The translations under genes and the position numbers were made by a program. A stretch of 63,731 nucleotides of DNA, the filler included, from Cercozoa sp. M6MM (lineage: Eukaryota; Protista; Endomyxa: Ascetosporea): assembly GCA_040357565.1 (NCBI GenBank). It is 9 parts of 9 records of this genome, joined end to end, with 100 filler letters (N's around TTAATTAATTAA, not from the genome) between each part and the next. Parts side by side here need not be neighbours in the genome. Positions count along the whole stretch, not along the records: positions 60,568 to 63,731 come from JBDODJ010001577.1; 8 more parts are not named here. One strand, 5' to 3'. Under the pieces are notes generated by a model that saw only the letters and a program-made list of their open reading frames with translations, did no database searches and was not told the DNA's origin. This document shows, piece by piece, positions 60,568 through 63,731 of the stretch (its first letter is position 1; the number at the start of each line of letters is the position of its first letter).

Positions 60568-60617
<50 letters not shown>

Positions 60618-60637
60618 GAATATGTGGATGTGTGCAG

Positions 60638-61977
60638 TCGCAACGCAGTCTCGACTCGTGCATCCAGGAGGCCTGTGCCGACTTCAACGGACCCTCGATG
60701 CCGCTCGGCATTGGTGGACAGCCCACTGGTAGTCCTGCGGTCCCTTTAGTCTCTCCAACCGCCCTCTAACCCTGCTGAAACCAACAGGCCGCGGTCGCTA
60801 CACGGAAAAGGTCGTGTGTCTCCTCAGTGGCGGCATCGACTCGCCTGTGGCGGCCTTTAGGTGCGTCCCCGCTGTCCCACACTCGAGTATCTTTCATTTC
60901 GAGTGCTTTAGGATGATGAAGCGCGGCTGTAAGGTCATTTTGGCGCATTTCCAGGTTTGTCTCTTTTTCGGGGTTTTCTTGTGCCGCGAAAATAAGGAAA
61001 GTGGGTTTTTGTTGTGCCCAGAACGTCAACCAGCTTGCTGAAGCCGCTGTGCGCGACAAGATCGAGAAGATCGCGCGTCAGCTGTCGCGATACCAGGTAT
61101 AAGTGCTCTTTGGGCCTGTGTTCCGGGTCCGGTTTTTTGTTTCTTTTTTTTTGTGTTGTTGGCGTGGTGCGATGAAGACGGGTTTTGAGTGAGTGTGGGA
61201 GTGTGCATGAGTGTGTGTGAGGCGTGTTTAGGTGGAGACCAAGCTGCTGGTGGTGCCGTTCGCGGAGTTGCAGCAAGAGATCATTTTGCATGTGGCGCCG
61301 CAGCATCGCATGCTCGTCTACCGCTACTTTATGCTGCAGATCGCGCAGGCTGTACTACCGTTCTTGCCTCCTATCCTCTGGCCTTCTATCCTCCCCCATT
61401 TAACCCCTGTGCCACACGCAGATTGCGCGCAAGTACAAGGCAAAGTTCTTGTGTACGGGCGACTCGATGAATCAGGTGGCCTCGCAGACGGCGCGCAACC
61501 TGGAGGCCATGTACCGCATGACAGACATGGTGCTTGACCCCCTTATCTCCCCCTTAACATTGTGCTTGACCTCCTTAACCTTTAAGTCCCTTTATGCCCG
61601 TTAACCCCCTGTGGACAGCCGCTGTTGGCGCCTTTGATAGGCGAGAACAAGGACGAGATCACAACGACGGCGCGTCGTATCGGCACCTTCGAGTTGTCGG
61701 CGCTGCCGTACGGCGACTGCTGCTCCTACTTCATCGCTAAGGTGTTACCCCCCTTTACCCCCCTCTTTACCCCCCCCCCCCTTTACCCCCCTCCCCCAGC
61801 ACCCGACGTTGTATGCGACGGAGGAGGAGCTGCGCGAGTGGACGAGCGGCATCGACAAGCGTGTGGCGCGGTAGCTGCGCTTCACCCCCCTGTTTACCCC
61901 CCTGTTTACCCCCCTATACGGTCGGTAGTCGCGCGATGCAGTGCGCTCAGATTCTGGATATCTCGGCGCCTGATAAG
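60638..61977 (+). other. thiI: ThiI PP-loop adenylation/thiolation domain
   Basis: [32 protein letters not shown]...[37 protein letters not shown]...[26 protein letters not shown]. Confidence 0.93.
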
Positions 61978-63535
61978 GTAGTAGTGTTACCCCCGTACCC
62001 CCTCTTACTAACCCCCCCCCCAGGTGGTAGAGTCGCAGGCGCTGCGTATTCCGGGCGATGTGGCACTGCCGGTACGGGACTGCTGTCCATGTGGACCAGT
62101 ATGTAGCCAGGCAGTATGCTTAAGGGAGCGTGCGTGTAGGCACCCGGCACATGTGGTTGGATGCCGACCAAGAAGGAGAACTGGCAGCATCAGATCCAGC
62201 AGCAGGTACACTTTGTACCATGGACGGTACAGATGGACCGACGTGTGCCTGTCTGGACAGGGTCAAGACCTGGATGACGAGAAACGCAGCAGTCAGTCCG
62301 CGCGGTCGGAATCACAGTCGGAATCAAAGTCGGAGTCAAAGTCGGAGCTGCCCAGTGTGCGCAGTATCGAGGTACCCCTTAATTAAGTACAAGTACAGAT
62401 GGGGGTACATGTGTACGGTACATATGGGTGGACAGTACGACCCGTCCGAGCAGCCGAGTGCGTACCTGGACAATGCGGCCACAACGCCGTTGGACGCGAG
62501 TGTGCTGGAGGCCATGCGGCCCTTCCTCACTCTGGCCTGCGCCAATGCGCACTCGCCGCACGCCATGGCCAAGGTGTCTCCCTGCCCCCTTACCCCCCTG
62601 CCCCCCCCCCTTACCCCCCCCCCCCCCCCCCCTTGACCCCCCCCCCCCCTGGTAGGACGCATCGCGTGCCGTGTACGAAGCGCGTCAAGTGGTAGATGGA
62701 AACACATGAGGCAGGGGGGTAAGATGGGGGGTAAGTCTGTCTGCATGTGTAGATTGCCGAGTCGATCGGCGCGAAACTGCGCGAATTGACCTTCACGTAT
62801 TACACGACCTTGTCCCACTTTTCCCCCCCCCCCCCCCCGGGGGGGGGGGGGGGGGGGGGGGGGGCGGGGGCCAACAACCTGGCCATCAAGGGCAGTGTTC
62901 TGGCACGTGTTGGGTACTGTCCCCTTGTCCCTGCCCCCTTAACCCCCTAACCCCTGTCCCCTTAACCCCCTAACCCTGCCCCCTTAACCCCTAACCCCTG
63001 CCCCCTTAACCCCCTAACCCCTGCCCCCTTAACGCAGCAAGTTGCCGAAGGAGACGCGGCGCGTGCGTGTCATCACGCAAGTGACGGAGCACGACTCGGT
63101 GCTCAAAACCGTTCGCTGGCTCGGCGCGTCGCCGCTGCTGCGTCAGTACGTTCTTACCCCCCCCTACCGCCCCCTTAACCCCTACCGCCCCCTTAACCCC
63201 TACCTGCCGCCCCCTTAACCCGAACTACCCTGGGTAGGTACGTGGACGTGAAGTTCGTCAATGTGAAGGAAGACGGCACTCTGGATCGTGCGCATCTGCA
63301 GGTAGCTTGCACTCTCTCTTAAGTGGGCACTCCTTAAGTAGGCACTCCCTTAAGTGGGCACTCCTTTAAGTGGAGGAGAGGACGCAGCCTTATTGGTATG
63401 TGTGCGCAGAGTCTGCTGGACAAGGAGGACATTGCGGACGAGACGGAACGCGCGGCGACAGAGACGTTTTTGGTGTCCGTGATGCAGGCCAACAACGAGA
63501 ACGGCGTCATCTTCCCGGTGCACGAGTACGCCAAG
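60638..63535 (+). CDS. thiI: ThiI (tRNA 4-thiouridine synthase)-NifS/IscS cysteine desulfurase fusion protein, about 19 exons visible, both ends truncated
   Basis: Exons splice GT-AG in one frame with no stop from GIGGQPTG...[10 protein letters not shown] through to YLDNAATTP...ELTFT. After one garbled poly-C/G stretch (62821-62870) the NifS motifs continue to VMQANNENG. Confidence 0.8.
62436..63535 (+). other. nifS: Class-V aminotransferase, group I cysteine desulfurase (NifS/IscS) N-terminal half
   Basis: [37 protein letters not shown]...[33 protein letters not shown]. Confidence 0.92.
62935..63032. repeat. Degenerate CCCCTTAA/CCCTAA telomere-like repeat filling an intron
   Basis: Seen directly; a similar unit recurs at about 63157-63220. 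Confidence 0.8.
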
Positions 63536-63543
63536 GTATGGAC

Positions 63544-63547
<4 letters not shown>

Positions 63548-63590
<43 letters not shown>

Positions 63591-63700
63591 ATCTATCTAT
63601 CTATCCATCCATCTATCTATCTCTATCTATCTATCTATCCATCCATCTATCTATCTATCTATCTATCTATCTAACTATCTATCCATCCATCTCTCCATCC

Positions 63701-63731
<31 letters not shown>
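63548..63731. repeat. (CT)n plus (TATC/CATC)n microsatellite, intronic; a (GATA)n tract is at 60568-60617
   Basis: Seen directly in the sequence. Confidence 0.95.

Follow-up and report, generated by a model that had tools for sequence, protein, structure and literature searches.

RESULTS

A candidate ThiI–desulfurase fusion gene

Can a single eukaryotic gene encode both a tRNA-thiolating enzyme and the cysteine desulfurase that feeds it with sulfur? The question is raised by a locus of Cercozoa sp. M6MM, an unclassified cercozoan placed in Rhizaria, at positions 60568–63731 of the window (the whole 63,731-nucleotide stretch of DNA analyzed, along which all positions are counted). This segment is a single complete contig (3,164 bp) of an NCBI metagenome-assembled genome (MAG), and the initial annotation had proposed that it carries a fusion of ThiI with a cysteine desulfurase. 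The reading we favor, with a probability of roughly 0.7, is that of a single intron-rich nuclear cercozoan gene, predicted to combine ThiI of the rhodanese-less kind with a dedicated NifZ/NifS-type desulfurase in a one-polypeptide 4-thiouridine relay.

The contig reads as 19 GT–AG exons without a stop, passing in one frame from ThiI through an acidic linker to the N-terminal part of a desulfurase. When the model was rebuilt from coordinates, exons 1–15 (60638–62796) gave 398 codons and exons 17–19 (63038–63535) gave 100, with zero stops in either block and AG…GT at each junction. The 18 GT–AG introns span 46–135 nt and many carry C-rich repeats; the gene is therefore eukaryotic. GC content at third codon positions (GC3) is 0.58–0.91 in all exons, the total GC of the introns is 0.45–0.79, and both intron style and GC3 are uniform along the whole contig. 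Exons 10–13 (62024–62071, 62140–62205, 62261–62371 and 62436–62573), annotated initially as carrying the frame between the two domains, were confirmed as phase-0 GT–AG exons of 48, 66, 111 and 138 nt. The features of the contig are as follows.

60638–60728, + strand: exon 1, end of the THUMP-to-PP-loop connector (…IGGQPTG), with AG/GT flanks; matches residues 291–297 of Nonionella P0008
60788–60860, + strand: exon 2, PP-loop ATP-binding motif SGGIDS at 60826–60843; ThiI, E = 2e-6
60912–60954, 61022–61096, 61232–61351 and 61422–61529, + strand: exons 3–6, ThiI PP-loop domain, GT–AG; ThiI matches in exons 5 and 6
61619–61741, + strand: exon 7, catalytic Cys-Cys pair at 61718–61723; ThiI, E = 1.3e-10
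61800–61870, 61929–61977 and 62024–62071, + strand: exons 8–10, C-terminal part of the ThiI fold, with exon 10 as its last strand
62140–62205, + strand: exon 11, linker, with a nearly invariant Cys (codon 62152–62154) in the alignment of 16 fusions
62261–62371, + strand: exon 12, linker, acidic and rich in Ser, based on a 12-nt tandem repeat (62305–62346), GT–AG
62436–62573, 62656–62691 and 62753–62796, + strand: exons 13–15, start of a class-I cysteine desulfurase; Aminotran_5, E = 1.8e-5 (exon 13)
62871–62913, + strand: exon 16, readable 3′ part; matches the SGGTE-NNLAIKG block of the orthologues, and its phase fits exon 17
63038–63145, 63238–63301 and 63410–63535, + strand: exons 17–19, desulfurase to about residue 168 of 400; Aminotran_5, E = 0.03 (exon 19)
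62823–62870, no strand: poly-C (16) abutting poly-G (about 31), obscuring where intron 15 ends and exon 16 starts
60568–60617, no strand: left end of the contig, an (ATAG)n microsatellite with period 4 and 12.5 copies
63548–63731, no strand: right end of the contig, a (TCTA)n microsatellite with 46.5 copies

The left-hand microsatellite is probably the cause of the assembly break at that end.

The product of this locus is already deposited as GenBank MES1917060.1 ('MAG: hypothetical protein MHM6MM_008820, partial [Cercozoa sp. M6MM]', 478 aa; P0002 hereafter), which exon 7 alone recovered at 100% identity in a profile-free search of 1.84 billion proteins. Its exons match the rebuilt model except for exon 16. 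The deposited model lacks the SGGTE-N loop encoded there because 62797–63037 was skipped as a 241-nt 'intron'. Pfam scans were done exon by exon, with P0002 representing the whole product. The check suggested in the initial annotation, with the ThiI and Aminotran_5 profiles, found both domains on P0002, at E = 1.9e-63 (214 bits) and 2e-14, respectively. The longest open reading frames (ORFs) on the minus strand of the contig gave no family match, and a scan of the contig against Rfam returned no family.

Introns at 61745–61797, 62585–62649, 62929–63033 and 63156–63221, among others, are made up mostly of C-rich tandem units (CCCTGCCCCCTTAACCCCCTAAC, for example) that recall telomere-like repeats; some introns of the gene are G-rich rather than C-rich.

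The same fusion in other protists

In searches for full-length relatives, about 16 protein clusters came up in which ThiI precedes the desulfurase, and no other proteins of comparable size. These clusters support the claim that the two domains are fused. Every scanned long match to exon 7 carried ThiI followed by Aminotran_5; the long best matches comprised P0004, P0006–P0009, P0011, P0014, P0071 and P0122 among others. Two of these derive from transcripts: P0004, a complete ORF from the transcriptome of the breviate Pygsuia biforma, holds both domains in one ORF, and P0008, a EukProt entry from the foraminiferan Nonionella stella, likewise spans both. The architecture and the linker Cys are both conserved in the orthologues. 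Those fusions that reach the relevant columns keep SGGxDS and the Cys-Cys pair of ThiI, as well as the Asp, Gln, His-Lys and Arg of the desulfurase. Since the catalytic motifs are kept in both halves, the family looks catalytically competent. A metagenome scan with P0002 recovered only stand-alone prokaryote-like ThiI genes, at no more than 54% identity, and no Cercozoa sp. M6MM transcript.

Five very long proteins (P0001, P0010, P0013, P0018 and P0029; 1,608–5,649 residues), on contigs of up to 2.4 Mb, matched the 41-residue exon 7 query 6 to 10 times each. They may contain a ThiI segment repeated in tandem or have a polyprotein-like arrangement.

The ThiI half

Pfam ThiI (PF02568) matched exons 2, 5, 6 and 7 individually, with E from 2e-6 to 1.3e-10 and each above the ThiI gathering score of 20.5 bits. 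By tblastn, exons 3–6 are colinear with four orthologues. Exon 7 aligned to residues 310–349 of Thermotoga maritima ThiI and 321–359 of Bacillus anthracis ThiI, catalytic Cys included, and its Cys-Cys pair occupies the position of the ThiI catalytic Cys (the equivalent of Escherichia coli Cys344). The SGGIDS motif and both Cys of the pair are invariant across the 16 fusions. Intron 2 (60861–60911; 51 nt), directly after the PP-loop motif, is in frame and free of stops, and its retention would add 17 residues there.

The initial annotation ended ThiI at exon 9 (…APDK). This is too early, as the folded domain continues into exon 10, its last beta-strand. The alignment of the Pygsuia orthologue with T. 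maritima ThiI runs to residue 384 of the 388, a point that corresponds to exon 10 here, and in the AlphaFold model of the Nonionella orthologue the ThiI domain closes with two strands (508–524). At the other end, the THUMP end is not visible in the window, as had been noted: the contig begins at the THUMP-to-PP-loop connector, and the N-terminal ferredoxin-like domain (NFLD) and THUMP region would lie upstream of it. In the orthologues, ThiI_fer was matched and the proteins align to full-length ThiI structures, with THUMP below the Pfam threshold. The orthologues also have an extra N-terminal region of about 180–290 residues that precedes the ThiI core. Before the ferredoxin-like domain, P0004 (residues 1–180) and P0008 (residues 1–110) have predicted alternating helices and strands and no Pfam match.

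No fusion gave a Pfam match to rhodanese (PF00581), and we therefore placed the protein in the rhodanese-less subclass of ThiI. The three-Cys Fe–S set of methanogen ThiI was not found; only the Cys-Cys pair is invariant in the PP-loop domain, and no conserved CxxC was seen there.

A real fusion gene might nonetheless serve another purpose, such as thiolating organellar tRNA, another position or another RNA, or passing sulfur to a different acceptor, instead of making cytosolic 4-thiouridine at position 8 (s4U8). That no eukaryotic s4U8 is known (PMC5372739), that the orthologues carry extra N-terminal sequence and a THUMP too divergent for Pfam, and that archaeal ThiI relatives are able to act at position 9 (PMC9825150) would all suit such a role. 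Yet the PP-loop, catalytic Cys and NFLD are conserved as in bona fide U8 enzymes, and a role in thiamine synthesis needs the rhodanese domain that the fusions lack (PMC9825150). We regard a different function as rather unlikely.

The desulfurase half

The visible part of the second domain corresponds to the first ∼170 residues of a class-I cysteine desulfurase of NifS/IscS type (PF00266), as judged from alignments. Exon 13 aligned to residues 5–40 of NFS1/IscS chains and exon 19 to residues 134–166 of Helicobacter pylori IscS. The active-site His (position of IscS His104) is encoded at 63090–63092 and is conserved in 15 of the 16 fusions. As noted initially, neither the Lys that binds pyridoxal 5′-phosphate (PLP) nor the catalytic Cys loop is visible in the window; the corresponding exons would lie past the (TCTA)n end. 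Among fusions that extend to these positions, the PLP-binding Lys, in its His-Lys motif, is invariant (14/14), and the persulfide loop Cys is kept in 12 of 13. In the Pygsuia orthologue, the domain aligned to a solved desulfurase across residues 8–378 with E = 2e-74.

One part of this half is damaged. The SGGTE-N loop is partly overwritten by poly-G (62839–62870), so that only …ANNLAIKG can be read, and codons beside the poly-C/poly-G junction look as if bases had been replaced by G. The junction looks like a homopolymer artefact of sequencing or assembly, of the poly-G read-end type and bridged by the assembler. It sits inside the desulfurase, downstream of the fusion junction.

Might the desulfurase half instead belong to a decaying or truncated copy, non-functional in this organism? 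Only about 40% of the domain is visible, its SGGTE-N loop is abnormal beside the poly-G, and the branch to this contig's protein in the desulfurase tree is long (1.69). But a branch of that length is expected, because the row fills 40% of the columns and one exon is missing. Moreover, the abnormal codons fall exactly at the homopolymer artefact, and all exons combine a GC3 of 0.58–0.91 with freedom from stops. Decay is thus very unlikely.

The linker and its conserved cysteine

Between the two domains, the initial annotation had described a low-complexity linker. For exon 12 this holds: the exon is acidic and repeat-built, with a Ser/Glu/Lys-rich part (62305–62346) made of 3.5 copies of a 12-nt tandem repeat, and the length of the linker probably varies between strains because of this repeat. 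For exon 11 it does not, since this exon holds the nearly invariant Cys. In the alignment of the 16 fusions, that Cys (C252 of P0002) is the sole well-conserved linker position. Fifteen of the 16 sequences have it, and in most of them the interdomain stretch contains at most one further Cys. In 14 fusions it lies 65–81 residues past the ThiI Cys pair (44 in P0151), a near-constant distance even though the spacing between the domains ranges from 101 to 337 residues. Bacterial ThiI proteins stop short of this position. Compared with the Nonionella linker, exons 10–11 scored above shuffled sequences (z = 3.1; 8 of 500 shuffles as high), and compared with the P0006 linker they scored weakly above them.

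In the Nonionella model, residues 524–617, linker Cys included, are predicted to be disordered (predicted local distance difference test, pLDDT, about 25–32), and the same prediction applies to the counterpart of exon 12. The linker Cys is best described as a conserved residue on a flexible tether; this would suit a role in shuttling persulfide from the desulfurase loop to the ThiI active site, but is not evidence for one. A docked position for this Cys, which we also considered, found no support in the structure model, where the segment is predicted to be disordered.

The linker is also where two adjacent genes, or alternative transcripts, would have to part, with ThiI ending after exon 10 and a desulfurase mRNA starting from the ATG at 62161 in exon 11. 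That ATG is in frame, the linker exons were called from frame and GT–AG signals only, and bacterial thiI and desulfurase genes are separate neighbors. However, there is no stop between the domains, spliced or not; a 3′ end and a promoter would need to fit in <200 nt; single ORFs run across both domains in the Pygsuia and Nonionella transcriptomes; and the conserved linker Cys lies upstream of the ATG. Two genes are therefore improbable. The fusion is also independent of predicted introns 10 and 11, because 62024–62371 stays open as one 116-codon frame when both are retained. Codon-position GC favors the spliced form, with exon 11 having a GC3 of 0.77 in its own frame versus 0.54 in the retained reading.

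Introns 10 and 11 together with exon 11 amount to 189 nt, and no stop interrupts them when they are read in frame with exons 10 and 12. An isoform retaining both introns would still be fused, with a Cys-rich insert replacing the segment that holds the conserved linker Cys.

Ancestry of the two halves

We placed both domains in trees by quick maximum-likelihood searches, with support from the Shimodaira–Hasegawa-like approximate likelihood ratio test (SH-aLRT) only; eukaryotic Nfs1 was left out, and most metagenomic rows carry no taxon. In the desulfurase tree, the fusions, this contig's protein included, form one clade (SH-aLRT 98). This clade groups (97) with the thiI-linked NifZ-type desulfurases of Bacillota and a small group from DPANN archaea, apart from the clade of alphaproteobacterial and other proteobacterial IscS. 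The earlier proposal that the system is separate from mitochondrial Nfs1 agrees with this placement, in a tree that holds alphaproteobacterial IscS and no eukaryotic Nfs1. In trees of the ThiI PP-loop domain, the fusions lie away from the Bacillota type, in a clade (SH-aLRT 99) made up otherwise of Woesearchaeota, Nanoarchaeota, Diapherotrites and Micrarchaeota. Constraining 14 fusion ThiI domains to one clade was not rejected and gave a higher likelihood (approximately unbiased test, p-AU 0.785). P0157 and P0151/P0071 were long-branch outliers in both trees and were excluded from the last one. The data suggest a DPANN-type affinity of both halves and a single origin of the fusion, which we hold as working conclusions only because the trees are quick, lack eukaryotic Nfs1 and include metagenomic rows without a taxon.

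Both halves cluster with the same set of fusion orthologues. This bears on whether assembly, or a contaminant, could have joined unrelated ThiI and NifS pieces, a concern because this MAG contig is short, ends in microsatellites and has one obvious mis-join at a homopolymer. Besides the shared orthologues, the uniform intron style and GC3 along the contig and the position of the mis-join, within the desulfurase and away from the domain junction, speak against a chimera, which we judge to be extremely unlikely.

A proposed single-chain relay

How might such a protein work? In the reading we favor, a linker of roughly 85 residues, flexible and acidic, would join the desulfurase to a ThiI part comprising NFLD, THUMP and a PP-loop ATP pyrophosphatase. 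On its mobile Cys loop, the PLP domain would form a persulfide with sulfur taken from L-cysteine, and ThiI would adenylate a tRNA uridine, most likely U8. The Cys-Cys pair of ThiI would then receive the persulfide sulfur, directly from the Cys loop or by way of the linker Cys, which could act as a swinging arm in place of rhodanese Cys456 of E. coli ThiI. The end product would be 4-thiouridine. Gene structure, the two domains and the motifs within the contig are observed here; we infer the missing N- and C-terminal parts of the protein, its substrate, its compartment in the cell and what the linker Cys does.

Several points weigh against this reading. The s4U8 modification is 'not yet reported in eukaryotes' (PMC5372739). 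Splicing at the fusion locus is a prediction, with frame and GT–AG signals defining the linker exons. The THUMP end, the PLP Lys and the Cys loop all lie beyond the contig, and exon 16 is damaged by the homopolymer junction. For orthologues other than Nonionella and P0006, the linker similarity of exons 10–11 is at the level of shuffled sequences. The predicted disorder of the linker leaves a role for its Cys in persulfide relay only a hypothesis. Finally, the trees were quick ones that omitted eukaryotic Nfs1.

A broader proposal is less likely than not: that a patchy group of protists (Rhizaria, a breviate and metagenomic lineages) might share an Nfs1-independent, one-polypeptide s4U synthase, with halves derived from DPANN archaea and a linker Cys replacing the rhodanese shuttle.

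The sequences themselves are already public, without a name; what is new is the reading. Its new elements are a conserved eukaryotic single-chain NifZ–ThiI with reversed domain order, the tether Cys and, as a working conclusion, the archaeal-type ancestry of the halves. The phrase 'two protists of 60 eukaryotes' reportedly goes back to Kotera et al. 2010. The literature does no more than mention ThiI homologues in a small number of eukaryotic genomes (PMC5372739, PMC9825150), and another review states that s4U 'is absent in eukaryotes' (PMC5372745). We found no description of a ThiI–desulfurase fusion in the full-text literature, a search outside of which most subscription journals fell, so an earlier description is possible; the statement in the initial annotation that no characterized eukaryotic example is known matches this searchable literature.

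If the broader proposal is right, these protists would provide the first eukaryotic case of tRNA 4-thiouridine made by ThiI. Reviews state that s4U8 is not known from eukaryotes and that cytosolic tRNA thiolation needs mitochondrial Nfs1; both statements may fail in carriers of the fusion, among them the cultured Pygsuia biforma. The protein would also offer a natural single-chain model of the NifZ–ThiI relay, with one mutable candidate shuttle Cys.

Comparison with known systems

The NifZ–ThiI partnership is established in Bacillus (PMC8300815). Bacillus subtilis NifZ and ThiI comprise the same two catalytic modules as the fusion, also lack rhodanese, and presumably transfer the persulfide directly. 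In B. subtilis, however, these are separate polypeptides with the gene order desulfurase then ThiI, whereas in the fusion a single polypeptide has ThiI first and the desulfurase second. The fusion further differs in its Cys-bearing linker, its introns, its eukaryotic host and a ThiI half that is not of Bacillota type. The fusion would share with E. coli IscS and ThiI the adenylation of U8 by a PP-loop enzyme and the relay of a persulfide, and it has the equivalent of the catalytic Cys344. E. coli uses the housekeeping IscS and rhodanese Cys456 as persulfide carrier; the fusion, having no rhodanese, has one conserved Cys on a disordered tether where E. coli ThiI would have that domain.

A scan of prokaryotes (one genome per species) gave 80 loci, 39 of them with both genes within a few kb. 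No fusion of thiI with a desulfurase occurred among these 39. The desulfurase preceded thiI as a separate ORF in 36, mostly in Bacillota (also in Alistipes), and thiI came first in the other three. A simple fusion of a Bacillota nifZ–thiI operon is unlikely, given the opposite gene order and a ThiI half that is not of Bacillota type. By sequence, both halves are closest to the ThiI and NifS of DPANN archaea (Woesearchaeota, Nanoarchaeota, Diapherotrites and Pacearchaeota). Unlike the fusion, DPANN ThiI is a stand-alone protein of 380–440 residues. The best desulfurase matches were L001, L002 and L004, and in none of the three archaeal nifS loci does thiI lie closer than 4 kb.

Fused or paired sulfur donors and acceptors are found in other systems, too. 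In natural cysteine desulfurase–rhodanese chimeras and relays of the ABA3/STR18 type (bioRxiv 10.1101/2020.03.25.008375), the donor is likewise fused to or paired with an acceptor. There the acceptor is a rhodanese, whereas that of the cercozoan fusion is a tRNA-modifying PP-loop enzyme.

Among viral contigs, the scan found one case, L081 (IMGVR_UViG_3300036765_000124; 171 kb, 24% GC, giant-virus-like). Its 921-residue ORF (L081:3923–6688) has the order Aminotran_5, ThiI_fer, THUMP, ThiI. As in the fusion, both domains are held in a single ORF; unlike it, the desulfurase comes first, there are no introns and the branch is very long. This ORF is probably an independent fusion. The DPANN relatives of both halves and the reverse-order L081 fusion would provide cases for the study of gene transfer and of the convergent fusion of enzymes from one pathway. 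The match to the desulfurase profile covered only about half of it in the L081 ORF, which adjoins a catalytic fragment of alanyl-tRNA synthetase and an EF-hand protein.

The nearest approach to the order ThiI then desulfurase among the scanned bacteria is a Clostridium sp. MAG (L013:3998–7436), in which desulfurase genes lie on both sides of thiI and the downstream one overlaps thiI by 36 nt.

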